This document shows, piece by piece, positions 1 to 45,640 of a stretch of DNA of 64,000 nucleotides. The position numbers and the translations under genes were made by a program. Source of the stretch: Azolla caroliniana. Taxonomy: Eukaryota > Plantae > Polypodiophyta. The stretch is taken from assembly GCA_043228905.1 (NCBI GenBank), contig JBHGNT010000008.1, positions 434,001 to 498,000 of the forward strand. The letters run 5' to 3'. Position 1 is the stretch's first letter, and every line of letters starts with the position of its first letter. The notes beneath the pieces were generated by a model, which saw only the letters and a list, made by a program, of their open reading frames with translations, was not told the DNA's origin and made no database searches.

Positions 1-3000
1 TCTAGGTATGTCTGGAGAAGTCATTGATGACTGTAACATAGTACCTACAACCACCGAATGTTGTCGTCTAGGTTGGTCCCCATACATTGAATGTATTACA
101 TCCAGGATCCCTTTGCTTGTGTTCCTCTCCTTTGGGAACGGTTGTCGGTGCTATTTGATGAATTGACAAGCTTCGCACACCCCTACAATTTCCTTATTGG
201 TAAAGGTCAGGAGTCCAGGGACAAGACCTTTTGACTGCATTCCCTTGAGTTTTTGGAAATTGACGTAGCCTATCCTCTTGTGCCATAGCTCTATGTCAGT
301 GTCGGCTCTCTAGCCCTTGGCATACATGGCCGAATTCATCTCGTGAGAGTCGAGGATAAACATCTGACCTTCTCTCCGACCCCTAGCGATGAGTCGGCCT
401 TCTTTTTCGATGAAGCGTCCTCCATCATTGAAGCGGACTTGCATGCCTTGTTCGACTATCTGGCCAACTAAGACCAGGTTCTTTGTTATTGTAGGAACAT
501 GCAAAACGTTCATGATGTATGTTTGTTTGCCTTCTTCCCCAAATGGGATGTAGTTTACGAAGGCGCTACGGCTCTTCTGTGTGCACAGTGGATCGTGATG
601 TACTAGATCATTTAGTGCTCAAGACAGAAAGGGGAAGCGGAAGGAAACTTACCTTTGCACAATCCAAAAGCTTCTACTTCATTACACGCAGAGCTCAACT
701 CGCTCTCGTCTATTTTCTATTCTTTTTGTTCTTAAAACTACTCTCAATCTTCTTACTACACTTTTTACCTAACTTATAAGTGACTTATATATGCAGCTAA
801 TTAGCTGTCTATAGCTAAATAGTTGTCAGTAGCTAAATAGTTGTGCATAGCTAAATAGTTGTTTCACCTTTATGTCCACTAGTAGCTAATTAGCTAATAG
901 CTACAATAGCTTATTTCTTAATAAGCATCGCATACCTTTCTTGAGCTTGCTTCTCAACACTCCCCCTCAAGCTCAACTTAGCCTTTCTTGGGATCATCTT
1001 CAATCTTCTTTTCTTCATGCTTTTCAACTACCATGCCGATGGTTATAACTCCCATCATGTCTCTAAACTGTGTATGTTTTTTCATGCACAATCCCTTCGT
1101 AAGAATATCAACAACTTGCTGATTTGTACTTACATACAACAGGTCCACTTCTCCATCAATCACTTTTTCTCTAACAAAGTGATAATGCACTTCAATGTGC
1201 TTTGTTCTTGCATGGAACACTGGGTTTTTTGCCAGCTGAATGCCGCTCATATTGTCACACCAAATTGTGACAGCACCATCTATATATTCTCCCAAATGAG
1301 AAAGCAATCTTCTGATCCATACCTCTTCATAGGTCGTTATTGCAGCTCCTCTATATTCAACTTCAGTACTTGATAGTGCAACAGTAGCTTGTTTCTTGCT
1401 ACTCCATGAAATAGCTGCCCTTCCCAATGTAAACATATAACCACTTGTGGATCTTCTGCCAGTTTGGCTTCCAGCCCAATCAACATTTGTATATCCTTCC
1501 AGCTTTATGATCAAATCAGCCCTGTAAAACAGTCCATAATTTTGAGTAGCTTTTACATACCTCAAGATTCTTCTAATGCAGTCCAAGTGTGGCTTTGTTG
1601 GCTGTTGCATAAACTAGCTGACTAGTCCAACAGCATAACTCAGATCAGGTCTTGTTATAGTCAAATATATGAGGTTGCCCACCATAGACCTATACATGTT
1701 TACATCTTCTATCTTGGCTCCCAAATCAGCCCTCAATTTGCAGTTCTTATCTAGTGGTACACCAATAGGTTTGCATCCAAGCATACCATACTTCTTCAAC
1801 ATAGTTGTTGCATACCATACTTCTTCAACATAGTTGTTGCATATTGTTTTTGGAACATATATATACCACTTTCAGATCTGATCATCTCAATGCCAAGAAA
1901 GTATATCAACTCTCCCAAGTCCTTCATATGAAATTGCATTTCAAGAATTTTTTTTCACCTTGCTTATTTCATACATAGAATCACCTCTGATGATTAAATC
2001 ATCTACATAAATCAAAATCACAACAATGCAATCATTTATCCTTTTTACATATAATGATGGATCATCCTTTGACATTTTGAAGGCAAATTTTTTCAGAGAT
2101 TCTAAAAGTTCTTTATGCCATGCCCTTGGTGCTTGTTTCAATCCATAGAGAGCCTTTTTCAGCTTACAAACATTTTCTGGATGCTTCTTATCTTCAAAAC
2201 CTAGTGGTTACACATATACACTTCTTCTTCTAAGTTACCATGTAAAAAAGCATTTTTTACATCCATATGGTGCAGAACCCATCTTTTGGCTGCACTCACA
2301 GCAAGTAGTGTTCTCAATGTTGCCATCTTTGCAACCGGTGCAAATGTTTCATCATAATCAATTCCATGCATTTGGGCATACCCCTTTGCCACAAGTCTTG
2401 CTTTATGTCTACTAACATTTCCATTGGAATTATGCTTTGTCTTGTAGACCCATTTCCAACCTACAACATTTTTTCCTTTCAGTAACTTTACCAAATCCCA
2501 TGTTATGTTTTCAGCCAATGCATCTATTTCTTCTTGCATTGCATTCACCCATTTCTAATCAGATTTTGCTTTATCAAAACTATTTGGATCAGGTATTTGT
2601 ACCACTTTAGACATGTATGCATAATGCATAGCCATATATGTGTCATAACCAAATCTTTCAATAGTCTTTTTCTCTCTATCTGATCTTCTTAGTTTCTAAT
2701 TTGCATCTTTCATTACCTTTTCCATACTAGGGATTTTCAGGGCTCCTATACCAAGCTCATTATCCAATCATGTATCTAAATCTACATCTTACATGTTTCT
2801 AGACCCATCATCAAGCATTTCATATTCTGGCATCTTCTGTTTTCCCTTTTTATCATCATATTTTTTGTGTCTTGCATTTTTTCCACTCCATGCATTAGAT
2901 TCAGATTTACTACCTGAGCTTTCAGATGGTCTAGTACATTCCATTGATGTGGAACTTTGTTGTCCAACATTGTTTCCATCTCTGTGGTTATCTCTTACAT

Positions 3001-5389
3001 TTTCAGATTTATCCCTGTCTTCATTTTCATTGTCTTCATCGGTTTCTACATTTCCTTTTGGGCTATACCAGCTGCCCAACTCATCAAATATTACATCATG
3101 GCTTACCACAATCTTTTTTGTCAAAGGTTTATAGCATATATACCCTTTTTGCTCCTCTAAATATCCAACAAAAACACATTTTTCAGCTTTTGGATCAAGC
3201 TTACTTCTCACTTTAGCAGGTACATGAACATAGGCAAGGCATCCAAACACTTTTAAGTGTTCTAAACTAGGCTTCCTGCCATAGAATCATTCTTCAGGAG
3301 TTACTTCATGTACTCCAAATGTTATACATCTATTTAGAATAAATTTTGTTGTGTTTACAGCTTCTGCCCAATAATACAATGGCATTTTTTTTTCTGTCGT
3401 CATGGCTCTTACTATGTTCACCAGAGTTCTGTTTTTTCTCTCAGCAACTCCATTTTGTTGTGGAGTATATCTACATGTAAACTGTCTCCTTATTTCTTGA
3501 TTACATAGAAAATCAGAAATTTCATTTGAGAAATACTCTCCTCCTCCATTAGATCTTAAGCATTTTATTCTAGTTCCAACCTGCTTTTCTACCATGCATT
3601 TAAACTTACATGTCTTTAATGAGGGAAAGGCAACCTGTTTTGCTTTCCATATTGACATGCTTCACATATTTTGCTCATCTCATAGTCTTTGAGCTTAGGC
3701 AGTCCAACCACTGCATTTTTGCTCAACATATTTTTCAATGTTTGCATCCTTATGTGACCGATTCTTTTATGCCACATTTCCACATCTGAGATTACACTCA
3801 TTTCTTCTGCAAACATGGTTGTAATCTTTTTAGGCATATCCACATCTAACACAAACATCCTTCCTTGAGGTTTTCCTTTTGCAATAAGTTTTCCCTGTTT
3901 CTCTATAAAGCATCCACTTTGCTTGAACTTAATTTGCATTCCTTGCTCAACTATCTGTCCAACAAAAATCGGATTTTTTGCAAGGTTTGGCACATGCATA
4001 ACATTCAGCATATATTTTGTTTTTCCTTTTTCTTCCCATAATGGGATATCTCCAACATGCTCTATTTGGTGAGTAGTATTATCACCTATCTTTACATGTT
4101 GTTGGGGTGGGGAGTGAAACCTAGAATGGCTTCACCCCCCTCCCAAGGGGGTTACAGTAGGGAGAGATCTAGAGAGAGAGGCAAATAGGAAATGACACAA
4201 ATGTGAGAGGGGGAAATTGTATATTTCATTATACCCCATGGGTGGGGTTTATATAGTACAAGAGGTAACCGTTACAAATAAAGAATGAGACAAGTAGGGA
4301 GTTACATTACTTACCCACTTTCTCACCTTTGTACACATGCACACAAATATGCATGTGTTCATACACATACTCATCCTCATACATTCATTTATAATACACA
4401 TACACAGCAACCACATCATTACACATACCCTTATGCATCCCCGTATATTCTTACGGGTAACACATGGCACGCCTATGGGATAGTGCATTGCACGGTGAAT
4501 CCACTCACCATGGCAACTCTTCTCGACCGGAACTCCATCGATCGTCTCAACGGTCGGAAATCCCTCGACCGGATCATTTCTCTACAATCGATAACTTCAA
4601 TCGGAGCTTGCTTGACTCGAACCTTCTCGTTCGGTCAACCCAAGTCGCGATTGGATCATACACCAATCGGCTAGTTCAATGTGGCATGGGTCGTGAAATC
4701 ATGTTGTGCATTTGTGTATTCTTTCTTTTATCATGTGAGTTGTGTTTTCGAAATTTCATGATTTGTACCCCTTAGTTTTTAAAATTCTAATTTTTACCCT
4801 CACATGTTTAGAATTTTATTAGGTACCCTCCGGTTTTGGAAATCTTCTCTACTACCTTCGAGCTTCTAAAATTCAATTGTGTGCCCTTGAGTTCTTGCAA
4901 ATTTTCTCTGCGTACCCTTCTCTTCTTTCATTTCCTCTCTTCACCTTCTTTCCCTTGTCCTCTTTTCTTCTTCTCTGCGTCTGTATTCTTCTTTTTCCTA
5001 CGTCCTCTTTTCCCCTCCTCTACGTCCGACTCTTCGTCGACTCGTTCGGCCTTCTGTCCGTTGTCTCCCCGTTAGCAGCCGGTTCGGCTGCTGACGTTCG
5101 GCGGCCAACTCTGTTGTTGTCCGCTCTATCGGACTTCGGCCCTCGTTGTCTACCAGTTGTCTGATTACTGTCGGACATCGTTCGTGGTTGTCAATTGTCT
5201 CCGCCGATCGTAGCCAGCAGTCCATTGGCTGCGCTCGCCGGCTGTTGTTGTCCACTGGTCGTGTCTGTCCAGCGGCCATCGCTCTGTCTAGGTGCCTCTC
5301 TCGGCAAACCTCTGTTTGGCTGTCTCTCGGCCGGCTCTTGGCGCTCAGCTGACTCTCGGCTCCCGGCCGTCACTCGGTCGTACTCTTAC

Positions 5390-5750
5390 TCTTGGGCATT
5401 GTTGCGAGCAGGCCCTTGTCGAAGCCAGATAATACTGCATTAGTGTCTTTCCCACCAACTACAAAGAATCTATGGAATGATGTCTGCAGCAGCTGCGAGT
5501 GGTTGTCTTCTTCTGAGGATGGAGAGGTGGAATGGGTGCACGAAGCAGAGGATGTCAATATTTTCGTAATGGAAGATAGTGTCCCTCTCTATAGCGTAGC
5601 AATCTCCTTCCTCCATGTCCATCGGTTGGAGCTCGTTCCCATCAATCCATGAGAACCGGCCTCTTCCTTTGTAGACCACAAATATTGGATCTGTGTCTAT
5701 GTATTGGGATAAGCGGAAGAGCATTTCTCCTGCCTATGTCTTGATGACTA
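5390..5750 (-). pseudogene. Captured, intronless vicilin-like (7S globulin, cupin_1) fragment
   Basis: VIKT*AGEM...SQYIDTDPIFVVYKGRGRFSWIDGNELQPMDMEEGDCYAIERDTIFHYEN...FHRFFVVGGKDTNAVLSGFD follows the N-terminal cupin of vicilin-like proteins. Contains a stop, a deletion and a frameshift. Confidence 0.75.
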
Positions 5751-5884
5751 GGAGGCATAGCTTCGGTTGAGTAGGTACTGATCAAACTCCTGAAGACCTA
5801 ATGCGCATCTGAGATTTGGGATCTGAACGACTGCCATGGAAGCTCTCGATGTTGTTGTGTCAGCTTCCTCTCATGGATTTATTT

Positions 5885-6420
5885 AAAGTTTCAACAGAAA
5901 CAATCTCATCTTCAATGGTCATCATGATCTGCAGCTTTTTTTATTCCACAACGAATAGCTACAAGTTTTGATGCCCCCCCAATGAAGACAAGGCATGGTA
6001 ACACTCTGAATTGCTTCCTTGAGTTTTGCCATTTTAGTTTCATCATCCCATGGCTTCACATCCAAGAGAACAGAGGACTTGCCACTCTCTTTCTTTCTTT
6101 GTACTAGCTTTCTTCTAAGCTTCGCATTCAGCTGCAACTTTCTTTTCCTCTTCAGTTTCTTCCTAGTTTTCCTCTTCAGTTTCTTCCTAGAGAGATCCAG
6201 ATCATCATCATTTGCTTCCTTGGTAGCCTCTACAGTTGGGGCAGCATCACAAACAGGGGCAGGCACTCCCGTAATGTTAACATCAACAAGGGTTCCCAGT
6301 AGAGATTTCTTTAGTAATGCAGAGATGTGGTTATACCAACATGATACATTCACTAAATCACTCTTGGGTGGCTGAGAAAAAGCAAGATATACTAGCAAGT
6401 CGTCTTTTGAGGCATAATAT
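5885..6420 (-). pseudogene. Processed (intronless) elongation factor 1-beta/delta (eEF1B) fragment
   Basis: ASKDDLLVY...[13 protein letters not shown]...DDDLDL...[20 protein letters not shown]..., then after frameshifts [32 protein letters not shown]. No introns across this span; both termini are missing. Confidence 0.93.
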
Positions 6421-9400
6421 CGAGAGCTCGTCTCATCTACAACCTTGCCTGGGTGGCCACCTATATTTGCATCACACAAATGGACTTTTAGGAGATGATT
6501 TTAGGGTTGTCATAGAGAAGCTCTCATAGGAAATGGGTGATGAAATGTACTTTTTCCTATTGTGGGTTTTGGCAAAGATTAGGGTTTGTTGTGGTGGGTT
6601 TTAATAAGGATTGGAGTTTATGCAGAGAATCTGGGGGCTTGATGAAGTGGGCTACAAGCAGAAATAAAGATTTCCAGTAGAAATTAGAGTTTCCTTGTGA
6701 TGTGGGTGATCATAAGGGATGTGCAAGAGAGAAAATGCATAGAATCATCTTATATCATGCACCCTACACACACATACAGAACACATACATGCGGACGAAG
6801 AGAGGGAGAGATAGAGATTAGTGATGGAGAGGGAGAGTAAGGGATAGACTTCCTCTCAAGGGAGGGTAGGCCTTTCAAGTGTGCCAAAAGTGTTGCTGGG
6901 GTGGGGAGTGAAGCCTAGAATGGCTTCACCCCCCTCCCAAGGGGGTTACGATAGGGAGAGAGCTACAAAGAGAGGCAAATAGGAAATGACACAAATGTGA
7001 GAGGGGAAATTTGTATATTTCATTATGCCCCATGGGTGGGGTTTATATAGTACAAGAGGTAATCGTTACAAATAAAGAATGAGACAAGTAGGGAGTTACA
7101 TTACTTACCCACTTTCTCACCTTTGTACACATGCACACAAATATGCATGTGTTCATACACATACTCATCCGCATACATTCATTTATAATACACATACACA
7201 TCAACCACATCATTACACATACCCTTATGCCTCCCCATATATTCTTACGGGTAACAGTACATAACCAGGAATCTCTGGTTCTCTTAGACTTTCAAACCAG
7301 TTTGCATGTCCTTTCATATTATTAGATGGCCCACAATCTACATACCACATAAACTCTTCATTACATCTCTGTGAACATTCAGCCATTGTTGTTGTTTCAT
7401 GTTGCACCACAAATGCATCATCTTTATCACAGGCTTCACTAGTTGAAGCATAGTTATTTTTCTGTCTCTTCCCTCTTTTTTCATCATTTTGCTTTTTATA
7501 GCATTCAGCCTGTGTATGGCCTGGTTTTCCACAATACCAACAGCCATCATCATTCAAATATAAGTTTGCTTACCTCTACCTTGATTGCTCCCCTTGCCTC
7601 TGATGTTGTTTCTTCCACTTACAGCCTGTTGTCCTCTTTCTTGATAACTGTTGTTGTTGGTTCTAGCTGAACCAAATCTTCCATGGCCTCTTCCTTGGCC
7701 TCTTCCAACACTATTGTAGAGGGCTTGCCCCTCAATCTCAAAGTTCCCTTTGTTTACATCATCCATCTGATTTCTTTCTTCCACTACAAGCATTGAAACC
7801 AAATCTAGAAAACTTGGGATGCTATCCCTTGTGAGGATAGATGTTTTGTAGCTTTTATATTGAGGTCCTAAACCTCTTAAGCATATTTCCACCTTATCAT
7901 CGTCTTCTTCCTTCACATTGATAGAAGCAAGTGATTCACATATGCTCTTTATTTTTAGAGCATACTCATTTACTGACATCTTACCTTTTTCCAAGGTATT
8001 TAGCTCAGTCTTCAACTGAAGCTTTCTAGCCTTTGTGTTCACTGCAAACAATTTTTGTAAACTGTCCCAAGCTTCTTTTGGAAGCATAGCATCTTGTATG
8101 TGTCCAAGCATCAAATCTGAGATGCTAAGTGAGAGCCAATGCAATACCTTTCTTGCCCCTTGATTCCATTCTTTAAATGCTTTAATCTCTGCAGTAGTTG
8201 CTTTAATCTCTGCAGAAGAAAATGCAACTACTGCAGAGATTAAAGCATTTTCTTCTAGGATCTCTGGAGCCTCTTCTAGGTCTCCTTCAATGTAATCCCA
8301 ATATCCTTTTCCCATCAGGAAATTTTTCATTCTGAATTTCCACGCCGGGAAATTGTTTTTATCTAATTTTTCTATGACTATTTGGTTTGCATTTTCAGCA
8401 GCCATCTCTCTTTCAATTAGGGCTTTTTTTAATGATTAACTTCACAGGCAACTCTCTGATTCAGATCAGCAAATAGAGAAACAACATTTCTCAGATTTGT
8501 ACTGTTCTAATCTTCTTTATGAGCAACTCTGCTCTAATACCATGTTACGAAGGCGCTACGGCTCTTCTGTGTGCACAGTAGATCGTGATGTGCTGGATGA
8601 TTTAGTGCTCAAGACAGAAAGGGGAAGGGGAAGGAGACTTACCTTTGCACAGTCCAAAAGTTTCTACTTCATTACACGCAGAGCTCAACTCGCTCTCATC
8701 TGTTTTCTATTCTTTTTGTTCTTACAACTACTCTCACTCTTCTTACTACACTTTTTACCTAAGTTATAAGTTACTTATATATGCAGCTAATTAGCTACTA
8801 GGAGCTAATTAGTTGTCTGTAGCTAAATAGTTGTGCATAGCTAAATAGTTGTGCATAGCTAAATAGTTGTTTCACCTTTATGTCCACTAGTAACTAATTA
8901 GCTAATAGCTATTATAGCTTATTTCTCACTAAGCATCGCATACCTTTCTTGAGCTTGCTTCTCAACAGTTTCCACATAGCCGTTCGGGCTTTCGTAGCTC
9001 CTTGAACCAATCCTCGTGGGATGTCATGTGGTTCGATGCGCCCGAGTTGACATACCATACATCTTCTGGTTTGGAGATGTTGGTCGGGTTCGAGGCTATC
9101 ATCGAGTGCGCTCTATGCCTCATCACAAACATTCTGCCACAATTATCGTAGTCGGAGTTGGAGGCGTAGTTTGTGAGTTGTCAACTTGTGGAGGCCGACT
9201 CACTCTTCTTTTTCTGACACTCTGCCTCACATTGGCCAAATTTACCACAGTATCTGCACTGGCCAAATAGTCCTGATTGCTCCCCCTTCTTCAAGACTCT
9301 CCACCTCGCACGTTCGAGACGTCTTGTCGGTAATAGAAGTTGTGTTCTCGGGGTTGCTCTTGGTTGTGTCGCCCTTGGCCAAATCAACCTCTTCTTCCCC

Positions 9401-12536: not shown

Positions 12537-13279
12537 CCGGTTTGGCTAAAACCAATTAAACTGGTTCGGTTCAGCTTGACCTTAGCCAAACCGAGATTAA
12601 ACCAGTTACGAAGAAGGCTCAGGCCTGAACGGAACCGCCAAACCATATGCAACAGCTTTTAACGGCTAGGTGTAGCTGTACTCCTAAGCATGATCGAGGA
12701 AATCAATCAAATTTGTGATTACAACAAGAATGGCACCATTGAGGAAACGAACAAATTTGTGATTATGTCAAGCAATTACAATTTCATAGCTCTACACTCC
12801 CAGTATTAACAATGGTATGGCAACAGAATAGCACACATCCCTCAAAAATGAGGAGCTAGCGTTGCTTTAAAATAATGAGTAGAGCGCATTTCTGCCTAGA
12901 AAACTAGAAAGTGTGTACAAGAATTATATGTTTGTGTTAAGTTAAGTGTCTCAAGTATGAACGATAGGAACATAATGATGGATGGTGGAGCAATACTATT
13001 GCTATAAAAACCAAACCAAACCAAAACACACGAGTGTGTACAAACACAAACTCTTGCGATTTCACGGAGACAAAAGTGAATGATATACAATACCATACAT
13101 ATACATTCAAGGGGATCCCCACCCTTCCGATCGATCGATCGATCAAAGAGGATCAGGTGAGAGGGGATGGGCGGCAGCTATCTATACATGTAGGCCACGG
13201 GAGAGAGCTAAGGTTTTCTTCCCCATAAAAAACACAGAGAGAGAGAGAGAGATGGAGGGAGGGAGGGAAAGAAGGAAGG

Positions 13280-14221
13280 TCATGTGTGCGCCGCTTGAAG
13301 GACCAATGTTGACGAATCCCACAACTTGAGACGCATTCCCAGCTTCTCCACCTCCGGTGGCGGCGGCGGAGGCGACGGAAGAGGAAGAGGGCTTTTGGTA
13401 GGGGGACCTGCCGCTGCCTTTGGCAACGAATTCCCCAACAAGCTCTCGCATATGGCTTGCAAGTATGCAGGGCTAGCCACAAATGGCCTGGCCGCCGCCG
13501 CCTCCTCCAATCCCCCGGCCCCACGTGACGACTCCCTGGGAGGCGGGAATTCGCCACCGTTTAGCAGCATTCCATCCCTGATGGCTTGCTGAGCCCTGGC
13601 CGCCGCTGCCGCCGCACTACTCAACGACTCCTCCACCATCCGGCGGCTTTCCACGGCCTCGCGGTGCCATTCCGCTTCCAGATCCGCGATCTGAATTGCC
13701 AGCCGCTCCTCCGCTGCCTCCGCTACCTGCGCCCGCCTCATCATCGCCTCCGCCCTCTCCTTCCACATCATTGCCTCTGCCTGCCATGCCCCATCCTCCT
13801 CTGCTACTGTTCTTGTTATTTCTCCCCCATGGCTATGGCTATGGCTATGGCTATGCCCCTTCCCCTTCATCTCCATTTGCGCCGCCAACACCAACCCCCC
13901 CAATTCAGCCTCCAGATGCATGATGCGATGCGACGCCTCCGCCTCCACCTCCGCCATGTCGGCGGCGAGCCGCTCTTCGGCCACGCGCGCCGCCACGAGC
14001 TCCGCACGCAGCCTCTCCGCTTCTGCGGTGGCCGCGGCTTCTCGCGATTGCGCCGCCGCCAGTTGGGCCCGCATCTCCCGGAGGGCCGCGTCCTTCCCAC
14101 GTGCCGACCACGTCATTGCCTTGAGGCGGCCGACCAGCAGAGAAGGCGGCTCCTTCATCAGCATCTCCTCATGTTCCATCTCCATCTCGATCACAATACC
14201 GGTAGTGGCCATCAGAGACAA
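13280..14221 (-). CDS. Intronless 313-aa coiled-coil protein with two LSU (RESPONSE TO LOW SULFUR/UP9)-like motifs
   Basis: GC-rich uninterrupted ORF with a TATA box ~120 bp upstream. Motifs ARVAEERLAADMAEVEAEA (aa 78-96) and AEAAEERLAIQIADLEAEW (aa 167-185) resemble the LSU signature AEEAEERLCSQLGELEAE. (HS)n linker and Pro-rich C-terminus. Confidence 0.8.
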   Translation of the reverse strand: MSLMATTGIVIEMEMEHEEMLMKEPPSLLVGRLKAMTWSARGKDAALREMRAQLAAAQSREAAATAEAERLRAELVAARVAEERLAADMAEVEAEASHRIMHLEAELGGLVLAAQMEMKGKGHSHSHSHSHGGEITRTVAEEDGAWQAEAMMWKERAEAMMRRAQVAEAAEERLAIQIADLEAEWHREAVESRRMVEESLSSAAAAAARAQQAIRDGMLLNGGEFPPPRESSRGAGGLEEAAAARPFVASPAYLQAICESLLGNSLPKAAAGPPTKSPLPLPSPPPPPPEVEKLGMRLKLWDSSTLVLQAAHT

Positions 14222-14341
14222 GACAGACTAACGGACACAGAGAGAGAGAGAGAGAGAGAAGGAGATATGGAAGGCTTTTTTTAAGTTACATATATGGAGG
14301 AAATATGCTTGTGAGAGGAATGGCCCTGAGCGGCTGCCTGC

Positions 14342-14347
14342 TTTATA
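14342..14347 (-). promoter_or_regulatory. TATA box of the LSU-like gene
   Basis: Minus strand CCTATAAAG, followed by a CT-rich leader up to the ATG at 14221. Confidence 0.7.
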
Positions 14348-14378
14348 GGGGAGGGATAGGCAGCCTGATACAGAATCA

Positions 14379-14398
14379 GGTCTAGATTCAATGAACCT
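14379..14398 (-). promoter_or_regulatory. UPE-box 1 (SLIM1/EIL3-type sulfur-deficiency element)
   Basis: Minus strand AGGTTCATTGAATCTAGACC matches 19/20 of the UPE consensus as I recall it, AG[GA]T[TA]CATTGAA[TC]CT[AG]GAC[AG]. It lies ~31 bp upstream of the TATA box. Confidence 0.85.
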
Positions 14399-14526
14399 GC
14401 CTGATGAGAAAAACAAAAGAAAGAGATTCAATTTCAAGGGGATGAAAGGGAATCCCCGGTTGGATTGAGGAGGAGGAATCGAAAGGATTTGATCCTCAGA
14501 ATATTATTTGGCTTCTCTCGGATCCT

Positions 14527-14546
14527 CGTATAGGTTCAATGAACCT
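14527..14546 (-). promoter_or_regulatory. UPE-box 2
   Basis: Minus strand AGGTTCATTGAACCTATACG, 19/20 to the same consensus and in the same orientation. Core AGGTTCA-n-TGAACCT is a perfect dyad. Confidence 0.8.
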
Positions 14547-14568
14547 TGTCTCCTTCTCCCAACATGTA

Positions 14569-14569
<1 letters not shown>

Positions 14570-14626
<57 letters not shown>

Positions 14627-14701
14627 GCCAATGTCCTTGCGTTGTCAACAAGAAAGTTCCTCGATTGAGTATCTTTGTGTGTGTGTGTGTGTGTGTGTGT
14701 G
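14570..14701. repeat. (CT)n and (GT)n microsatellites
   Basis: Visible runs at ~14570-14623 and ~14677-14701. Confidence 0.95.
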
Positions 14702-17700
14702 GACATAATCTGAACCAAATGGCCTCCCCCTTGCCTATTGACCTTCACAATCGTGATTCGTGGCACAATCCAATGCAAACGCCAGATACACGTTTGCAAA
14801 TCTAAGTCTCTTGTCGCGAGAATCTTTCGTGCTATAGCTCATGCACTAAGTGTAAGTAGAAAATCCATACTTTCTTGCTATTATTAAAAGGCGTATTTTG
14901 CCGCAACCGTCAAGGGCCCTACATTAGATTCAATCCTTTACTTAGAAAACCATATTTCCCCTTTTTATTACTATACTTAGAGAAAACCACACTTCCTCTT
15001 TATTTTGGGGACAGTTGTTAAAGAGCCCCTAGAGGACAAATTTCACTAGTACGTGTTTGCCACACGTCAATGAGAAATCATGAACATCTTTTCACCACAA
15101 AAACCCAGATAGTAGTTGTATGCGATGAAAAGTCATGGATCTCTCTCTGCAACGTGGACGGAAAAGATCTACACTCCATGAACAGTCATGAATCCTTTTT
15201 TCCAAAGTTTGTTTTCAATGAACATTCATGCATCTCTCTTCGAGTCATTTTGTGCATTGAATATTCATGATTATCTTTGCCACACCCAATCGTTGCTTGC
15301 AATGACAAAATGAATGTGATATAATGTTATTTTTCTCACTTGAGTATCAACAACCCATTCCCAAATCATGGTATTGCCTCAATGGTAGAGTCTATCCAAA
15401 AAGTTATCCCTTATCATTCTTGCCCAAACTAACTTGTTTCCTTCATCCAACCTGCTTTAAACATATATTTTATATTCCATTGACAATGAAATTGATACCA
15501 TATATTCTAATATATAATATTTCACAAGGTCTATCACCTTATCCAAGTCAAATTTATTTGCGTGAGAATACAACTATGTTATTATGATATAGTTGCACAT
15601 ATGTAAGTACCCTCAAGGTTCAATGTTAGTTTGGTAAGACGATAATCAGTAATTAATCAATGGATAGATATGCATAGTGCAACCGTTAACATGGTCAATG
15701 CAACAAATAGTGCAACATTTTGGGAGAAGGAAGGGAGGGGCAAAATTTGCACATGATAGATATTGTACATTAAAAGAGATGTGATATTCATACGGTTGTT
15801 GATGGGATGATGGAAGAACTGTACATAATGCTTTTAATGTGATCGATGTGTTCAAACTTCAAATTTACTCATTCCTACAAGAATGTGAATTTATACAACT
15901 ATTTTACCTACCCCCCCCCCCCCTCACAAAAAAAAAAAAAACTCCCAATTAAAATTTGTCCCTTCATAATCAACAAAATGCGTTTTTAATTTCCAAGTTG
16001 AAGGAAAAAATATAATTATTTGTCTAAAATGTCAACATGATATGTGCCTAGTTCCATATTGTAAATATTCTTTGGTAAAGATTACATAAAGAAAATTGCA
16101 CCCTACGCAAAGTGTTTCGATGTACACTTACCTTGCATTGCTTGAGGGATTGAACTCCTTTATACATAGAAGCACGGAAATGTTTGCAAGTAGATCTGCA
16201 CCACACGTAATGCCTTATGTGTTTCATTGAATTCTTATAATAAGCACTATTTATCAATCTTGTAACTTGTAGATAGAATTGCATGTAAATAGACATGTGT
16301 CCAGACTCCAGACACACATATGTTATCGTTATTGGCAAAAGTGTTTTGAGCAGTTGTTCTAGGATATGGGTACACATTCATAGCAACCAATTTGATGACA
16401 ACTTGTCCGATAAAGTGGTAGATCGAATCCATAATATGGAGAAAACTTTTCGGGAAAATAAAAACAAGATGAGATTATTTTAGTGGATGAATTGGGACGA
16501 TATGTATGCACATTATGCTCACTCTTACATATGTCAAAATTTCAACAATTATAATCTCCCCTTCATATGATTGTGAACCATTTGGTATAAAGTCATATAC
16601 AAGAGGCTCAGTGATATATTCTTATATGTTTTCTTCACAAATTTTATCGTTGCCTTTTTTAAGGGACATTGCTATTGTAATGAATCCTTGCATTGTGGAA
16701 AACCTTCCAAAGAGATATTTTGAGGAGCAAAGCATGATAGTGTGCACGATCTCAAACTAAAATTATTGTGAAGATATTATAATGAGCAGACCATCAAAAC
16801 AAGGTATTGGAGACTCCAACACACAAAACATCAATGTTGTAACTAAACTTATTGTAAGTATTTTATAATGAACAAAACATCAAAACAAAAAGTGCTAGGA
16901 ACTCCAACACACAAAACGTTAATGTTGGAAAAGCATTCAATGTAGTTTTACAATCTCTTGTTTATACACTTGATTTGGGATTTTCAAATAGCAATTGCAA
17001 GAATTTTAAAGCATCCATGTTCGGAAATGTTCTAATGTAGACAATAATTTCATATTTGAGAGTTATCACATACTCTCTTGTTTATTATCAAATAAGATGT
17101 AGAAAACTTCACTGCAAAAGTAAGCTATTTTTATGTCGGTCCATTTATATCTTTGTGGATTTGGGGGGTTGATGCTTAAGCTATGTTGAGTAGTCAAGCA
17201 TTTCTCTATCATGTAAATAACTTGATTAACCACAATAATAGTTTGTCTCACCTAGAAACATGTGACACTCAATGGTCTCACAAGGGAGAGCCCCACAATA
17301 AGTCGATACATCAAATGGTTGCGGATATTAACACATGAAAGGATAATTTTGTATCGACGATGTTCTATTATAAGACTTGGTTAGAATAGAATGTTGTGTC
17401 CCTTGGTTAAACCCGACCTTGGACAAGACACATTCAATGATTCAATGGGCCAAAACAAGTAAAACCCTCCTTAGTCCAAGCTTGAAGTACCAAAACTTGA
17501 TACTTTCAATACAAATGGAATGAACACAGAAGAACAATACAATGGTTTATGACAAGAATCCGGGTTGGCTCAGAATACACAACAGGCTGGTGGTTGAACT
17601 TTGGACTTCAACTTAACGTGATCTGCGTGGTTTGAGGAACGGATCTGGTGCGGGATTGGGTGGGCACACATGACGCTATGTGACACATGAATGTAGAGAG

Positions 17701-18095: not shown

Positions 18096-20715
18096 ATGAG
18101 GCCATGCGACAGTCAATTCATCGTTCGGAGCACATCCTCTACAGCTGTGAGACATGATTGCGTTTATAGTTTTTTCTCACATTGTTGTCGCTGGCTGCAG
18201 GAATATGTCTTCATTTTCTCTTAATAATAAGTCACTCGCTACCTCTGGTTGACCACATTTACAGGGGTCCCGGCCGCGTTCAACAAGAAACAGGCCCACA
18301 ATGCACCCAAAGTATGCACAAATCAAGTCATCTGTTGACAGGTATGTCCTCCATACATGCATACCTGCCTACATATATGTGTATTGTCCTTGTCAGTTGT
18401 AGTCCTCTGCAATGTGTCTCCTCTGCATCCGACGGTTCATGAATATACTCTAAATCCTCCTGTGTTTGGTTTCAGTGGACTGAACATGCTAAAAGTAAAT
18501 GAGAAATTCCCTGAATCGAAAATAAGTATCCTTTGATCCCGTTAGCTTCACCGAGAGTGTGATGACTCACTGGTTTCATTATGCATGGTTAACTTGCGAA
18601 TTTCTACCATATGCCAATTCTTCTCCGTTTTGTTTTCTTATCTTATGTGTTATTGCTCCATTTTCCAACTCTGGCACTACCAAGATGCACGATTTAAGAA
18701 AGAAGAATCATTTCGCCGGATGAAGTCGTCCACACTTGTTCGGCTACTCACTGACACCGAGGTAATGATCAAGTTTATAACTTCTTATAGAAAGAACTCT
18801 GAAGAATATCCTATGTTCACATCAATGTAACATGGCCACTGTACATAGTGAGATTGTCCGTGTAGTATGAAAATGGTGTATATATTCTGAGTTAGGGGTT
18901 CCACAGTAAAGAATTCAATTAAGGATAATGCCTTAGACTAAATTGAAGAGAACAGATATCTTTTTCTATTTGACCTTTCACGAAACATTGTATTGGTATC
19001 CTAAGTTGCAAAGGGAAGGTGGGCACGTGAGACATTATTCTTAAGCAGATGAATTTTCTAGTAAATATGCTTTCCATATTTTCCTGCATTTCATGAAACT
19101 TCATGGTAATGAAGATACTAGGTGTAAACATAAATTTTTCTGTGAGACTACAATTGAGTAGGATTATGCAGACGAAGCGATCATAATCCCTTTGAATCAC
19201 TGATTTAATCGCAACTGTGTAGAAGATTATTAGAGCAGAAAACAGTCTACCTCTTTGTTGAGTTCCAAACTTGGAACCAGACCCATGAATTGACCTTTAC
19301 ATAGCTCTAATGTTGCTTGATATATCTAAAGGTGTTAGTATATATAATATGAAATAGGAACATCTCTTCTGTGAAAACACTTTAAAACAAATTTTGTGGA
19401 AGAGTCATATAAATTTACTCTTACAAGAAAAAGGAGTACCTAGGTTTGAAATATCTGTAGAAATTCTTTTCCAGGAGGAAGTGGAATGCCTCATTCTTGA
19501 TGTTAGAGATCGTGATGCGTTCAATATATGTCATTTAAAAAATGGTATATAATTGAACCAAATCACAAGTTCGCTTTCAGTTGAAATTAATCTTCAAGTG
19601 ATTTATCATTCTTTTTTCTACCCAGCAATCTCGTTTCCAGCACCACTGTTGAAGAGATCAGTGAATATCTTTCCACTTGAGATACGTGACTTTGTAAGAT
19701 ACTTTCACTTGGTTTGCTTCATGAAATAGGATGAGCTTCCTTTCATGTTTTATTAATCATGAAACAGGATTTGGATGTTATTATAGATAAACAAAGAGCC
19801 GAAGAAGATCATTGTGTTCTATGATGATAATGAGATCTCGGCACAGGTATATGTCATCTGCATATACTTAAATATTTAAGACTTGTTCTTCAAACTAGAT
19901 GCATAACAACATAATAAAGTTCAATTATCCAAATAATCGAAACCTTGAGTTATAAATTGTATATGAGACAACATTTTCAGTTGGAATATTGTGTCGAGTC
20001 TCTAGGCCATTTTGATCTTTTAGAGATATTAACACACATCTCTCTCTCAATTTTTTTTGCTGTCTCCCCTCAAGAGGCATTTTGCCCTCCACACTGACTG
20101 TTGCTTATTCTGCTGTATTCTGCTCAACATTTAGTGTATGAATATGATTTGCTTTTATTCATGTAGTCTAGTGCCTCCTGACTTGAGAATGGCTTTTGGA
20201 GAAGAACTTTGGGGGGAACTTGTTGATTTAGGTTGCTCATCTTTCTCTAAAATGATCACCCATCAATAAAAAAAAAGTTAATTTAAGACACCTATTTCTT
20301 GTCACATCTTCCAAAGATGATCTAACATTTCTAGTTAAAAATAATAGAAAACTTTCCATATAGATAATAGAAAAATATATTTTTAGGAAGGATTTGCAAC
20401 TCATTTGCTTTGTTTATCATGTGCAGAACACAGGAAACTTATTCGTTGAGAAAGGTGTGAGCAACATCTTTATGCTGAGTGGTGGTAGGTAGGATCAATG
20501 GTTTTGAGCTGCGTTCCGACGTGCTAATATAATAGTTTTAACACTTACCTTCGTCAGGTATGAAGGAGCTGGGGGTAAATTACCCTGAATTCATTGAAGG
20601 GCAGTTCATGATTGAAAGCCCTTATGTTTCTAGGACAGGAACTCCCTCTGTAAAGACTGAGTGTAGTGGTTGGTCTTGCAGTTCTTCACCAATGGTGTCC
20701 ATCAGAAGGCATTAG
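18096..20715 (+). CDS. CEP41: Centrosomal protein 41-like (ciliary, inactive rhodanese domain), 9 exons, ~222 aa
   Basis: GT-AG exons in consistent phase: 18096-18146, 18265-18341, 18476-18525, 18685-18761, 19475-19544, 19626-19693, 19787-19846, 20427-20484, 20558-20715 (669 nt). Translation HPKYAQIKSSVDSG...RFKKEESFRRMK...LILDVRDRDAFNICHL...KIIVFYDDNE...EKGVSNIFMLSGGMK...YPE parallels CEP41. Exon 1 is the least certain. Confidence 0.88.
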
Positions 20716-40239: not shown

Positions 40240-43200
40240 TGTCGTGAATCAACGCTCCGATTCACCTTCACCGTTCGGCCACAACCGAGAAATCACGAAT
40301 CAATGCAGCAGAAAATAGGAAACACAGGGAAGGACACGATAACATAGGGATTAACGTGGAAAACCCTAAATGGGAAAAACCACGGGAGTCCTCAAACTCC
40401 AACTATCACTATGAACAGAGATGTACAAAGGTGTAGCTACAAGGCAACAACCTTGAGCTCACTGTCTTCGCCACAGGCGGCGGTAATACACAGAGGCGTC
40501 GACCTCTTCCTCTCTCTCTCTCTCTCGGCTGCTCTCACTTCGCTCTCTCGGCTGAAAACATAAAAATGAGCAACAACATAAACTGTTTGCCCTAAGTCAT
40601 ATTTATGCACATATGACTTTTCGGGCTATTTACAAATAGAGCCTCAAGGGCTCTTAGCAAAACATATTCACAAATATGTCCCCGCATCCGGATCTCTCTC
40701 TCCGGGTACATTCGTCATCCGGCTCCGTAACCGGGATCTTCAGCATCCGGCTCCGTAGCCGGGGTCTTCGTCATCCGGAGAGTGCGCTCACCGGGCCTGT
40801 ATCTTCATCCGGTTCCGTAACCGTAACCGGGCTTGCCGTCTACTCTCCGGACATCCCATCCGGAGGGACCGAAATCCCAACAAACTCCCCCTTCACTTCG
40901 GCATGGGATGTCTCTCCAATCCGATCCTCTTCCGGCATGCTTCCAGCTTGTCGGGTGTGAGCACCTTGGTCAGCATATCTGACCCGTTCTCGTCCGTGTG
41001 GATCTTCGTCAGCACGAACTCCTGGTCTTCTATCCTTTCCCGGATCCAGTGATATCTTCGCTGGATGTGCTTCGTCCGGGAGTGATAGGCCGCGTTCTTC
41101 GCAAGGTGGATGGCACTCTGACTGTCGCAGTAGAGTCGGTACTCCTCCTGCCGGATACCGAGCTCTCTAATGAAGTCCTTCATCCATATTATTTCCTTGC
41201 CGGCTTCAACAGCCGCCATGTACTCCGCCTCCGTGGTTGACAACGCAACCGTCTTCTGCAGCCTCGACTGCCAGGAAACAGCTCCCCCTGCATACGTCAT
41301 CACATACCCTGATGTGGACCGGCTGGTATCTGCATAAGCCGACATATCCGAATCGGTGAAGCCGTCGAGTTCGGGTTTACCGGAGCCGAATCGGAGGCAC
41401 ACGTTTGCTGTGCCCTTCAGGTATCGGAGTATCCACTTGGCCGCGTTCCAATGCTCTTTGCCGGGATTGCTCATATACCGGCTCACCACTCCGACTGCAT
41501 ATCCTATGTCCGGTCTTGTACACACCATTGCGTACATCAAGCTTCCGACGGCAGAGGCATATGGTACTTTCATCATGTCCTCCTTTTCAGCCTTTGTCTT
41601 AGGGCTTTGCTTGCTGGACAACTTGCAGTTTGCCGGGAGGGTCGATCCGACCGGTCTTGCTTCCGACATGTTGAACCGTTGAAGCACCTTTGTCACGTAC
41701 TTCTCCTGTGACAGCCACAACTGCTTCTTCTTCCGGTCTCGGATGATGTGCATCCCTAGTATTTGCCTCGCCGGACCCAGGTCTTTCATTGAGAAGGTTC
41801 TGTGGAGAGCCTTCTTCAGCATCCGTATCTTGACCTGGTCCCGTCCGACGACCAACATGTCGTCCACGTACAGGAGGAGTATTAGAAAGTCTCCTCCTTC
41901 GAACTTCCTCACAAACACGCAGTGATCAGACTGCGTTTTGTGGTACCCTTCGTCGGTCATGAAGGAGTCGAATTTCCGGTACCACTGCCGGGGAGCCTGC
42001 TTCAAACCATAAAGGCTCTTCTTCAACCGGCATACCAAGTGCTCCTTCTCTTTCTTCTCGAATCCTTCCGGTTGCTGCATGTATATCTCTTCTTCGAGGT
42101 CACCGTGAAGGAATGCCGTCTTCACGTCCATCTGTTCTACCTCGAGGTCCATGCTTGCCGCTATGCTCAGCACCGTCCGGATGGAGGTCATCTTCACTAC
42201 CGGGGCAAATATCTCGTCGAAGTCGACGCCCTTCTTCTGCTGGAACCCCTTCACCACGATCCTGGCTTTGTATCTCGGGGGGTTTCCGGCATCTCCCGGT
42301 TTCAGCTTGAACACCCACTTGTTACGGAGTGCCCGTTTTCCTTTCGGCAACTCCACAAGTTCATATGTGTGGTTCTCATGCAGGGAATCCATCTCCTCCT
42401 GCATGGCACTTAACCACCTGCGGCTATGAGTGTCATGCTTCGCTTCTTCAAAGCTCTCCGGCTCCCCCTCGTCGGTTAGCAGCACGTGCTCTAGTTCCGG
42501 AAATCTCCGGGGGGCCCTTCTCTCTCTTAGAGGATATCTCCGTTCCGGAGCTTCGGTAACCGGTTCTTCCGATTCTTCTTCATCCGAATCCATTTCGGGA
42601 TCGGGGCCGGTTCCGGTATCATTTTCATCTTCTTCGGCCGGTTCTGTTTCTTCACCGTCTTCGGCCGGATCTTCGAGTGTTAACCGGTCCCTTGCCGGTC
42701 GGGACTGCTCCTCGTAGAGTTGATCCTCACCGGTCGACTTGGAGCTCTTCATCTTCTTCTCCGACTCCCAGTCGGCGAGTGTCTTGTCCTCCATGAAGAC
42801 GATATCTCGACTCCTGAATATCTTCTTGTCGACCGGGTCCCATACTCGGTAGCCGAACTCGTCGTCGCCGTATCCGAGGAATATGCATGGCCGGGTCTTT
42901 GGATCTAACTTTCCTCTCCGGTCCTTTGCCACATGCACGTATGCGAGACACCCGAACACCTTCAGATGCCGGTAGGACACTTCCTTACCGGTCCACACTC
43001 TCTGCGGCGTGTCTCCGTCCAAAGGTACTGAGGGTGATCTGTTTATCACGTATGTCGCCGTCGACATTGCCTCAGCCCAAAACCCCTTGGGTAATTTCGC
43101 ATGCGCTAGCATACTCCGGACCCTCTCCATTATGGTCCGGTTCATCCTCTCGGCCAGCCCGTTCAGTTCCGGCGTCTTCGGCACAGTAAACTCGAGCCGG

Positions 43201-45640
43201 ATTCCCTTCGAGCGACAGTACTCCGCGAACTGCCCCCGGTATTCCCCTCCGTTATCCGCTCGTATCGCTTTTAGCTTCTTGCCGGATTCCCTTTCCACTC
43301 TTGCGTGGAGTTCTCTGAAGACGGACAACACTTGGTCCTTTGTCTTCAGCGGTGCCGTCCACAGCTTCCGGCTATGGTCATCAATGAATGTTACGAAGTA
43401 CTGGGCTCCGCCATGTGACTTCGTTTCTACCTGACACACATCAGTGTGCACCAACTCCAATGGTGCGCTACGTCTCGTCGGTGGCCTTGAGTGGAAGGAG
43501 GTTCGGTTCTGCTTACCGGCCAGGCAGTCGGTGCACTTCTCCAGGTGCACATGCTTCACTGGAATAAGGTTGTCTTCTGCAAGCCTCTTCATCCCCTTCT
43601 CACTCATGTGGCACAATCTTTTGTGCCACAGCTCACCGGCAGTGTCGGCTGCCACATTCAGCTCTTCCGGACATAACCGGGCATTCATCAGGTACAGTGT
43701 GTTGTCTTTCCGGGCCCGAGCCACTATCAGGCTCCCCTTGCTGAACTTCATTACGCCGTTCCGGATGCTACCTGTGTAGCCTTCATCGTCTAGCCTCCCG
43801 GCCGAAATCAGGTTCAATCGAACCTCCGGAACGTGTCGGACATCCTTCAGCAGCATTTTGCATCCGGTCGGGGTTGTCAACCACACGTCTCCGATGCCGG
43901 CAATCCGGCACGTACCTTCATTTCCCATCCGAACACAGCCATGCTCACCGGCTGTGTAGGATGAGAAGTATCTTCTCTCCGGGGTCAGGTGGAACGATGC
44001 TCCGGAATCGACCACCCAGGTCGTCTTATCGCCGGCAACGTTTAGTTCACCTTCTTCGGTGATGAGCATGATCTCCTCTTCACTTGCCGCGAGTGCCGTC
44101 GTTCCTTTCCGGTCCTGCCCTCGCCGATCCGGACCTCTCCGGTCCGTGGCTCCCCGGTATGCACCGTTTCGCTCCGGTGACTTCTTCGAATCGGTGTCGT
44201 CGGCTCCGTTGTCCTTTCGGTAATGCCGACAATTCTTCCGGAAGTGCCCCGGCTTCCCACAGTGGAAGCATGTGGGCCTTCCTCTTGACTGCGACCGGGT
44301 CCCTGACTTCTCCCGTCTTTGCGGACTCCGGTTCCATTGTCTTCCCCGATCCGATTCGGTAAGCAGCGCCTTCGAGTCGGAGGCCGGTTCTTTATCTCTC
44401 CGACGCGCTTCTTCGTTCAAAATACTTGTCTTTACCGTCTGTAGAGACAAGTTATCTTCGGTGCAGGAGGTGCTGAGAGTCACCACCAAGTTCTCCCAGC
44501 TCTCCGGCAATGTACACATCAGGATGATGGCTTGCATTGCATCCTCCAACGGGAACTTGATCGCCGCAAGCTGGTTCACGAATCCCATGAACGTGCTTAC
44601 GTGTTCCACCATACTCTCGCCGTCGCGGTACTTGAGGTTCACTATTTTCCTCATCAGGGAGGTCCGGTTCAACGCATTCTTCCTCTCGTAGAGGCCCGAC
44701 AGCTTCCGCCACATCTCGTATGCGTTGGTGTCGTTCGCCACATGTTGTAGAACGCTCACATCGACGTATTGCCGAATGGTTGCAACGGCTTTCCGGTTCA
44801 GAAGCCTCCATTCCGTCTCAAGTACCCCCTTCGGTATTTCCGACCTGTCAATCGGTTCGTACAGGTCCCGAACAATCAAAAGATCCTCCATCTTGATCTT
44901 CCAGTCGGCGTAGTTCTGCGCATTCAGCACCATCATTCCCGGCTGCCCGCTACTGCCGCCTTCCATTTTCTGCACTGCCGTCGCTCTGATACCAGTTTGT
45001 CGTGAATCAACGCTCCGATTCACCTTCACCGTTCGGCCACAACCGAGAAATCACGAATCAATGCAGCAGAAAATAGGAAACACAAGGAAGGACACGATAA
45101 CACAGGGATTAACGTGGAAAACCCTAAATGGGAAAAACCACGGGAGTCCTCAAACTCCAACTATCACTATGAACAGAGATGTACAAAGGTGTAGCTACAA
45201 GGCAACAACCTTGAGCTCACTGTCTTCGCCACAGGCGGCGGTAATACACAGAGGCGTCGACCTCTTCCTCTCTCTCTCTCTCTCGGCTGCTCTCACTTCG
45301 CTCTCTCGGCTGAAAACATAAAAATGAGCAACAACATAAACTGTTTGCCCTAAGTCATATTTATGCACATATGACTTTTCGGGCTATTTACAAATAGAGC
45401 CTCAAGGGCTCTTAGCAAAACATATTCACAAATATGTCCCCGCATCCGGATCTCTCTCTCCGGGTACATTCGTCATCCAGCTCCGTAACCGGGATCTTCA
45501 GCATCCGGCTCCGTAGCCGGGGTCTTCGTCATCCGGAGAGTGCGCTCACCGGGCCTGTATCTTCATCCGGTTCCGTAACCGTAACCGGGCTTGCCGTCTA
45601 CTCTCCGGACATCCCATCCGGAGGGACCGAAATCCCAACA
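40240..45640 (-). mobile_element. Intact, young Ty1/copia element J (Tnt1/Tork-like)
   Basis: 643-bp LTRs 40240-40882 and 44998-45640 with 3 differences seen by eye. Perfect TSD CTATC, PBS-iMet, PPT and a single open gag-pol frame. Confidence 0.97.
40893..44966 (-). CDS. Gag-Pol polyprotein of element J, 1357 aa
   Basis: First ATG after the PBS (MEGGSSG). CFHCGKPGH knuckle, WVVDSGAS, LWHKRLCH, integrase D-D-E, RT YVDD and RNase H are all in one frame. Confidence 0.95.
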   Translation of the reverse strand: MEGGSSGQPGMMVLNAQNYADWKIKMEDLLIVRDLYEPIDRSEIPKGVLETEWRLLNRKAVATIRQYVDVSVLQHVANDTNAYEMWRKLSGLYERKNALNRTSLMRKIVNLKYRDGESMVEHVSTFMGFVNQLAAIKFPLEDAMQAIILMCTLPESWENLVVTLSTSCTEDNLSLQTVKTSILNEEARRRDKEPASDSKALLTESDRGRQWNRSPQRREKSGTRSQSRGRPTCFHCGKPGHFRKNCRHYRKDNGADDTDSKKSPERNGAYRGATDRRGPDRRGQDRKGTTALAASEEEIMLITEEGELNVAGDKTTWVVDSGASFHLTPERRYFSSYTAGEHGCVRMGNEGTCRIAGIGDVWLTTPTGCKMLLKDVRHVPEVRLNLISAGRLDDEGYTGSIRNGVMKFSKGSLIVARARKDNTLYLMNARLCPEELNVAADTAGELWHKRLCHMSEKGMKRLAEDNLIPVKHVHLEKCTDCLAGKQNRTSFHSRPPTRRSAPLELVHTDVCQVETKSHGGAQYFVTFIDDHSRKLWTAPLKTKDQVLSVFRELHARVERESGKKLKAIRADNGGEYRGQFAEYCRSKGIRLEFTVPKTPELNGLAERMNRTIMERVRSMLAHAKLPKGFWAEAMSTATYVINRSPSVPLDGDTPQRVWTGKEVSYRHLKVFGCLAYVHVAKDRRGKLDPKTRPCIFLGYGDDEFGYRVWDPVDKKIFRSRDIVFMEDKTLADWESEKKMKSSKSTGEDQLYEEQSRPARDRLTLEDPAEDGEETEPAEEDENDTGTGPDPEMDSDEEESEEPVTEAPERRYPLRERRAPRRFPELEHVLLTDEGEPESFEEAKHDTHSRRWLSAMQEEMDSLHENHTYELVELPKGKRALRNKWVFKLKPGDAGNPPRYKARIVVKGFQQKKGVDFDEIFAPVVKMTSIRTVLSIAASMDLEVEQMDVKTAFLHGDLEEEIYMQQPEGFEKKEKEHLVCRLKKSLYGLKQAPRQWYRKFDSFMTDEGYHKTQSDHCVFVRKFEGGDFLILLLYVDDMLVVGRDQVKIRMLKKALHRTFSMKDLGPARQILGMHIIRDRKKKQLWLSQEKYVTKVLQRFNMSEARPVGSTLPANCKLSSKQSPKTKAEKEDMMKVPYASAVGSLMYAMVCTRPDIGYAVGVVSRYMSNPGKEHWNAAKWILRYLKGTANVCLRFGSGKPELDGFTDSDMSAYADTSRSTSGYVMTYAGGAVSWQSRLQKTVALSTTEAEYMAAVEAGKEIIWMKDFIRELGIRQEEYRLYCDSQSAIHLAKNAAYHSRTKHIQRRYHWIRERIEDQEFVLTKIHTDENGSDMLTKVLTPDKLEACRKRIGLERHPMPK

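Follow-up and report, generated by a model that had tools for sequence, protein, structure and literature searches.

An LSU-like gene with two UPE-boxes as a candidate sulfur-starvation module in Azolla caroliniana

LSU proteins act as hubs when plants respond to a lack of sulfur. A phylogenomic study from 2022 and a review from 2026 present the family as Spermatophyta-specific and apparently absent from bryophytes and algae (PMC9229004, PMC13621318), and no description of LSU genes or of UPE-boxes in ferns was found in the literature. A stretch of 64,000 nucleotides (nt) from the fern Azolla caroliniana (contig JBHGNT010000008.1, positions 434,001 to 498,000; hereafter the window) raises the question of whether this view is too narrow. 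A reading of the letters alone (the sequence-only reading) had pointed out an intronless gene with LSU-like motifs behind two UPE-box-like promoter elements, and had stated, in line with the literature cited above, that LSU genes are known essentially only from seed plants. The analysis reported here suggests that the locus is probably an LSU-like gene with a UPE-box promoter, which would form a sulfur-starvation module driven by an EIN3-like (EIL) transcription factor.

The gene is read from the minus strand, as an uninterrupted open reading frame (ORF) that starts with an ATG at 14212 and ends with the stop codon at 13280-13282. Its product is rich in alanine, glutamate and leucine. The coding sequence and the promoter elements are located in the window as follows.

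13280-14212, minus strand: intronless coding sequence of the LSU-like protein, 310 amino acids (aa) plus stop, seen as an ORF and in a transcript-like contig that spans it
14341-14347, minus strand: TATAAAG box, read from the sequence, with box 1 lying 32 nt further upstream
14379-14398, minus strand: proximal UPE-box (box 1), AGGTTCATTGAATCTAGACC, one mismatch, 167-186 nt upstream of the ATG
14527-14546, minus strand: distal UPE-box (box 2), AGGTTCATTGAACCTATACG, one mismatch, 315-334 nt upstream of the ATG

Both boxes have the orientation of the gene and lie upstream of the TATAAAG box. They were compared with the published UPE-box consensus AGRTWCATTGAAYCTRGACR, that is AG[G/A]T[T/A]CATTGAA[T/C]CT[A/G]GAC[A/G] (PMC9229004). 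The single mismatch is a C at position 20 in box 1 and a T at position 17 in box 2, and the two boxes are the sole matches with up to three mismatches in the whole window. For matches with at most one mismatch, the analytic chance expectation at the base composition of the window is 2.3e-4 per window, or about 3 per 0.75-Gb genome. The half-site bound by EIL factors, tebs, has the consensus AYGWAYCT. The sequence AGGTTCA-T-TGAAYCT is palindromic, in box 2 perfectly so over the first 15 nt, in agreement with a UPE-box that consists of two partly overlapping tebs half-sites in opposite orientation (PMC4206189). The coordinates, sequences and shared orientation given for the two elements by the sequence-only reading were right, as was their position upstream of the TATA box. 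Its distances of 158-177 and 306-325 nt are correct when counted from a TTG at 14221; counted from the ATG at 14212, they become 167-186 and 315-334 nt.

The two boxes have only 19 nt in common and the sequences on either side of them differ, so that they do not stem from a recent segmental duplication. An origin as the two ends of a duplicated segment or of a miniature inverted-repeat transposable element was rejected, since the shared sequence is this short and the repeat is direct, not inverted. A core of the sulfur-responsive element (SURE) type, GAGAC on the gene strand, is found at 14548-14552, 1 nt upstream of the distal box; as a 5-mer, it has no statistical weight. SURE is also frequent in the UPE genes of Arabidopsis (PMC4212615). 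The region between the gene and its divergent neighbour also has long microsatellites of the (CT)n and (GT)n types, close to the distal box on its upstream side (14565-14700). An Rfam scan of the window returned zero matches.

Three angiosperm LSU loci, all of them intronless, were scanned with the same script as the window, with the following result.

Amborella LSU4: box at -129, one mismatch, gene orientation
Nicotiana sylvestris LSU3-like: boxes at -154 and -337, zero and two mismatches, gene orientation
Arabidopsis halleri LSU: box at -119, one mismatch, gene orientation
Window gene: boxes at -167 and -315, one mismatch each, gene orientation

The window promoter resembles those of the angiosperm LSU genes in having boxes that lie between about -120 and -170 and between about -320 and -340 and are oriented like the gene, and the Amborella box agrees with the core of the window's two boxes, GGTTCATTGAACCT, at every position over 14 nt. 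The identification of the elements as UPE-boxes is thus borne out by placement and orientation as in three angiosperm LSU promoters. The homology of the protein, described below, and the layout of the cis-elements are two independent lines of evidence that agree.

The published LSU motif, A-x3-E-E-x-L-C-x2-L-x-[ED]-x-[ED] (PMC9229004), occurs in the protein in two imperfect copies, at aa 75-90 and aa 164-179, in which Ala replaces Cys and either Met or Ile replaces the second Leu. The sequence-only reading was right about the intronless gene with LSU-like motifs, the motif being altered in both places. The expectation that homology searches would miss such a gene also proved right, as word-index searches with the whole protein and with its second core gave zero matches and the Pfam score is below the cutoff. 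In the ESM Atlas, the whole protein retrieved only unnamed coiled-coil look-alikes with low recognition. Exact-sequence look-ups of the 310-aa product and of a 313-aa product found no record, and no named member of the family was found in a collection of 15 billion proteins. An exhaustive phmmer search against 1.84 billion cluster representatives retrieved five proteins, P0001 to P0005, among which P0002, a 1172-aa bacterial surface protein, was dismissed as a relative, the match being a spurious coiled-coil one.

The link to LSU comes from profile comparisons. Profile A2 was made of six domain pieces of the window protein's own family, without any angiosperm LSU, and was searched at E<=0.01 with a database size of 5.77 billion. 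The search shows specificity and not completeness, because only the 8000 candidates with the most shared words were scored. It matched 92 proteins, namely 91 angiosperm-type LSUs and P0001, with a best E of 7.5e-10. PF24980, the Pfam family of LSU, is found in 86 of the 91 LSUs, and the other five, including the Amborella 'RESPONSE TO LOW SULFUR 4', carry the LSU motif. The motif Cys or the strict motif is missing from some of these retrieved LSUs as well (14 out of 91), Cucumis having Ser.

In hhalign, A2 was aligned to A3, an alignment of 20 named angiosperm LSUs, with a probability of 98.3 and an E of 1.2e-14 over 70 columns (LSU columns 21-90 of 106). The whole protein was aligned to A3 over aa 46-96, corresponding to LSU columns 24-74, with an E of 3.7e-5. 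The real A2 profile scored 69.6, as compared with a mean of 11.3 (standard deviation 2.4, maximum 20.6) for 200 column shuffles of A2 and with 17.9 for the reversed profile; the best E among the shuffled controls was 0.0033. Because of the A2 retrieval, the hhalign comparison and the shuffle control, homology of the window protein to LSU, as proposed by the sequence-only reading, can be considered well supported.

Expression of the gene was assessed from the contigs of four public runs (Logan) aligned to positions 12600-15400. Three runs, X4, X9 and X10, are small, transcriptome-sized and RNA-like, the last being the guess of the tool, and X2 is a DNA run. In X4, X9 and X10, which come from three studies and bear three organism labels, coverage is confined to 12758-14226 and is zero over 14292-15400. 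The promoter (14272-14559) and the sequence beyond it are covered by the DNA run X2, with zero differences over 14272-14559. The LSU-like gene is transcribed. A single X4 contig of 1002 nt spans 13283-14226 without a gap and with one synonymous difference, at 13535; the coding sequence is hence without an intron. At 13535 all four runs have T where the window has C (synonymous, Arg226), so that the window holds the rarer allele. Near-identical sequence is found in public runs with six organism labels. The transcribed flanks are as follows.

12758-13279, minus strand: probable 3′ untranslated region, with X4 and X9 contigs covering 12758-13219 and zero coverage over 12600-12693
14213-14262, minus strand: 5′ untranslated region with a CT-rich repeat, RNA-like contigs reaching 14226 plus 33 further letters

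The contigs are interrupted by the GA/CT repeat at 14240-14262, which hides the transcription start.

The RNA-like and DNA runs also contain a second copy, diverged in sequence and either a paralogue or a homeologue (window 13891-14221; locus L005). It differs from the window gene by 21 differences and by 27 inserted letters near the N-terminus. P0001, which stems from an ENA metagenome assembly, matches the product of this copy (82% identity in phmmer) and ends early, after the first core. Over 80 aligned codons of the window gene and P0001, the ratio of nonsynonymous to synonymous substitution rates (dN/dS) is 0.14 at a dS of 0.24, which indicates purifying selection on the LSU-like gene. 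A diverged X2 contig, which joins the window sequence at 14411, reads CATTGAACCGGCC directly before that point (at about 14381-14410), with 30 letters visible. The promoter of the second copy seems to keep the palindromic core of the box at the position of box 1, with differing flanks.

The protein is longer than known LSUs and is organized differently, as listed below. Alignment A1 consists of the window protein, P0001, P0003, P0004 and P0005.

14081-14119, minus strand, aa 32-44: N-terminal family motif AMTW-A--KDAAL, drawn from the invariant columns of A1
13877-14116, minus strand, aa 33-112: LSU-like core 1, with the LSU motif of aa 75-90 at 13943-13990
13829-13858, minus strand, aa 119-128: His-Ser linker, encoded by a hexanucleotide microsatellite
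13598-13831, minus strand, aa 128-205: LSU-like core 2, with the LSU motif of aa 164-179 at 13676-13723
13319-13342, minus strand, aa 291-298: C-terminal motif LGMRLKLW, which is LGMRLKVW in P0004 and looser in P0003

In the N-terminal motif, A32, M33, T34, W35, A37, K40, D41 and A42 are invariant in A1, and AMTW-A--KDAAL was not found in the angiosperm LSUs compared. The two cores are weakly alike (BLASTP E 0.002, 13 of 22 positions identical) and are separated by the linker, which includes HSHSHSHSH. The contigs of all four runs break at 13821-13881, and the length of the linker may vary between alleles or species. An AlphaFold2 model, computed from the shallow alignment A1, has helices at aa 23-119 and aa 132-217 with a predicted local distance difference test score (pLDDT) above 90; the pLDDT drops below 50 over aa 120-130, in the His-Ser linker, and the C-terminal third is mostly disordered. 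The protein is thus predicted to share the alpha-helical coiled-coil character of LSU.

P0003, P0004 and P0005 (284, 209 and 219 aa), each derived from transcript contigs of roughly 1 kb, are 37-43% identical to the window protein. All four proteins have in common the AMTW-A--KDA motif and the core AEE-LA-----EAEA, with LGMRLK-W shared in part. The members of this unnamed family range from 209 to 310 aa and have one or two LSU-type helical cores. When compared with P0004/P0097/P0098 and with P0005/P0099, the window protein differs by its two cores, P0004 and P0005 being single-core proteins. P0003 also has two cores, which are 68% identical to each other and sisters in a rough core tree (support 95/97), so that the duplication in P0003 is separate from that of the window protein. 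Hence the two-core state arose at least twice. In the same rough tree, the fern-type pieces and 18 angiosperm LSUs lie on opposite sides of a single branch (support 88/81).

P0003 comes from run SRR2103747. The runs SRR2103733 and SRR2103737 are ferns of a 69-fern RNA-seq project (PRJNA281136; PMC10893450, PMC5795342), and SRR2103721, in the same number range, is cited elsewhere as rice. A fern origin of P0003, drawn from its run-number neighbours, is thus suggestive only. In runs SRR17638748-52 (loci L003, L004 and L006-L010), one species co-expresses two members of the family, one of the P0005 type (219 aa) and one of the P0004 type (209-235 aa), the latter with a C-terminal LGMRLKVW. Contigs of Joint Genome Institute metagenomes, scanned for genomic copies of the relatives, gave 598 pattern matches, none of which was real.

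By analogy with the systems known from angiosperms, sulfate deficiency would lead an EIL factor of the SLIM1/EIL3 kind to bind the UPE-boxes and thereby to turn the gene on. The helical coiled-coil protein would then act as an LSU-like adaptor, which binds and supports enzymes of sulfate reduction and other partners. The EIL binding, the sulfur responsiveness and the set of partners are presumed from several precedents. The UPE-box is a target of SLIM1 and of the tobacco NtEIL2, and it makes genes responsive to a shortage of sulfur (PMC4292543, PMC4206189). Only about eight Arabidopsis genes are reported to carry the complete box, and the expression of each of them rises when sulfate is withheld (PMC4212615). 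The binding partners of LSUs include ATP sulfurylase, APS reductase and sulfite reductase (SiR), and LSU1 enhances SiR activity (PMC11658185). Furthermore, EIL factors are found throughout streptophytes (PMC9136324).

Several observations weigh against this proposal. LSU (PF24980) is the top Pfam family for the whole protein, with a score of 18.5 bits (E 0.002) for a cutoff of 30. The protein is also three times as long as a usual LSU (310 aa as compared with about 90-125 aa) and lacks the motif Cys. The loci of the relatives are all transcript contigs, without a promoter for comparison. The UPE-box could not be assigned as the prime binding site of SLIM1 (PMC4212615), and with generic EIL half-sites in the boxes the inducing signal could be ethylene or another one. 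Core 2 taken alone scores 19.4 bits on PF24980 (E 0.0011), aa 157-181 corresponding to profile positions 27-51 of 53, and P0003 scores 28.2 bits (E 1.9e-6) in two stretches, also below the 30-bit cutoff. The comparison with an LSU profile that had been suggested by the sequence-only reading consequently has two outcomes, the Pfam score falling short of its cutoff and hhalign giving an E of 1.2e-14. Because of its size, the absence of the Cys and the sub-cutoff Pfam score, it is more accurate to describe the protein as an LSU-like variant than as a canonical LSU.

The main competing explanation accepts the homology to LSU and has the boxes serve an ethylene signal of the EIN3 type, or the signal of another EIL factor, in a lineage where the split between SLIM1-type and EIN3-type EILs may not apply. 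It draws on the composition of the UPE-box from two generic tebs half-sites (PMC4206189) and on the finding that most bryophytes and lycophytes have group A EILs only, in a survey where ferns were unsampled (PMC9136324). However, the match in the window covers all 20 nt and thus also the 3′ CTRGAC that lies outside the palindrome, and the layout repeats that of genes induced by sulfur deficiency. The uniform induction under sulfate starvation of the approximately eight full-box genes of Arabidopsis (PMC4212615) also speaks for a sulfur signal, and an ethylene or other EIL signal is regarded as unlikely here. Far less probable still, and strongly disfavoured, is a resemblance by chance, in which an Ala/Glu-rich coiled-coil ORF mimics LSU next to accidental palindromes. 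The low complexity of the protein, its Pfam score below the cutoff and the uninformative feature search of the ESM Atlas would all be compatible with such a coincidence. Composition does not explain the hhalign score of 69.6, however, as the shuffles reach 20.6 at most, and apart from P0001 the matches of the family profile are all LSUs. Neither the box expectation of 2.3e-4 per window, nor a promoter layout common to three angiosperm LSU genes, nor a dN/dS of 0.14 would be expected from an accident of sequence.

The surroundings of the gene include one further gene, located head-to-head with the LSU-like gene.

19424-20712, plus strand: exons of a CEP41-like rhodanese gene, from stop-free segments, a weak Pfam Rhodanese match (E 0.035) and an Atlas rhodanese cluster (0.88)

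The neighbour, which we take to resemble human CEP41 around its FMLSGG motif, had been named a CEP41 gene by the sequence-only reading. A rhodanese gene is indeed present, and its identity is backed by a weak rhodanese match only. The RNA-like runs have no coverage towards it up to 15400; either its first exon lies beyond 15400 or the gene is silent in the sampled tissues. A CEP41-like neighbour points to a plant with motile sperm and would, by itself, also be compatible with a cycad or Ginkgo; near-identical sequence under six organism labels does not fit Ginkgo, a single living species. The gene pair is flanked by nested Ty1/copia-type retrotransposons, at 1-8405 on the minus strand and at 26000-50400, within which an unbroken polyprotein ORF of 1378 aa is found (40893-45029, minus strand).

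Returning to an LSU-like gene under UPE-box control, what is new is a known module in a new lineage, together with a new protein architecture. On balance we lean, with less confidence than for the module itself, towards an EIL/UPE-box/LSU module that predates seed plants, ferns having kept a longer LSU, either ancestral or parallel, behind the same two-box promoter. If this is true, the seed-plant LSU of about 100 aa would be a trimmed derivative, and the 'Spermatophyta-specific' view of the family would reflect the limited sensitivity of homology searches. The protein and its cis-wiring would then go back at least to the last ancestor shared by ferns and seed plants. These lineages diverged roughly 400 million years ago, and a 20-nt promoter element would have been held in place over that time. 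In addition, the family would provide two natural variants with which LSU can be dissected, one that lacks the motif Cys and one that has two cores. Profile A2 finds the family where standard searches fail.

Among the known systems, the LSU/UP9 family (Arabidopsis LSU1-4, tobacco UP9C) is the closest to the window protein, which resembles it in being intronless, in its all-helical coiled-coil prediction and in the core AEE-RL---L-ELEAEA, aligned over about 70 columns. The window protein differs from LSU/UP9 in its two cores with a His-Ser linker, in the additional motifs AMTW-A--KDAAL and LGMRLK-W, in the replacement of the motif Cys by Ala and of Leu by Met or Ile, and in its sub-cutoff Pfam score. 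As for the pair formed by the UPE-box and SLIM1 (EIL3) or NtEIL2, the window promoter is like it in matching each box with one mismatch, in its opposed half-sites and in the proximity of the boxes to the TATA box.

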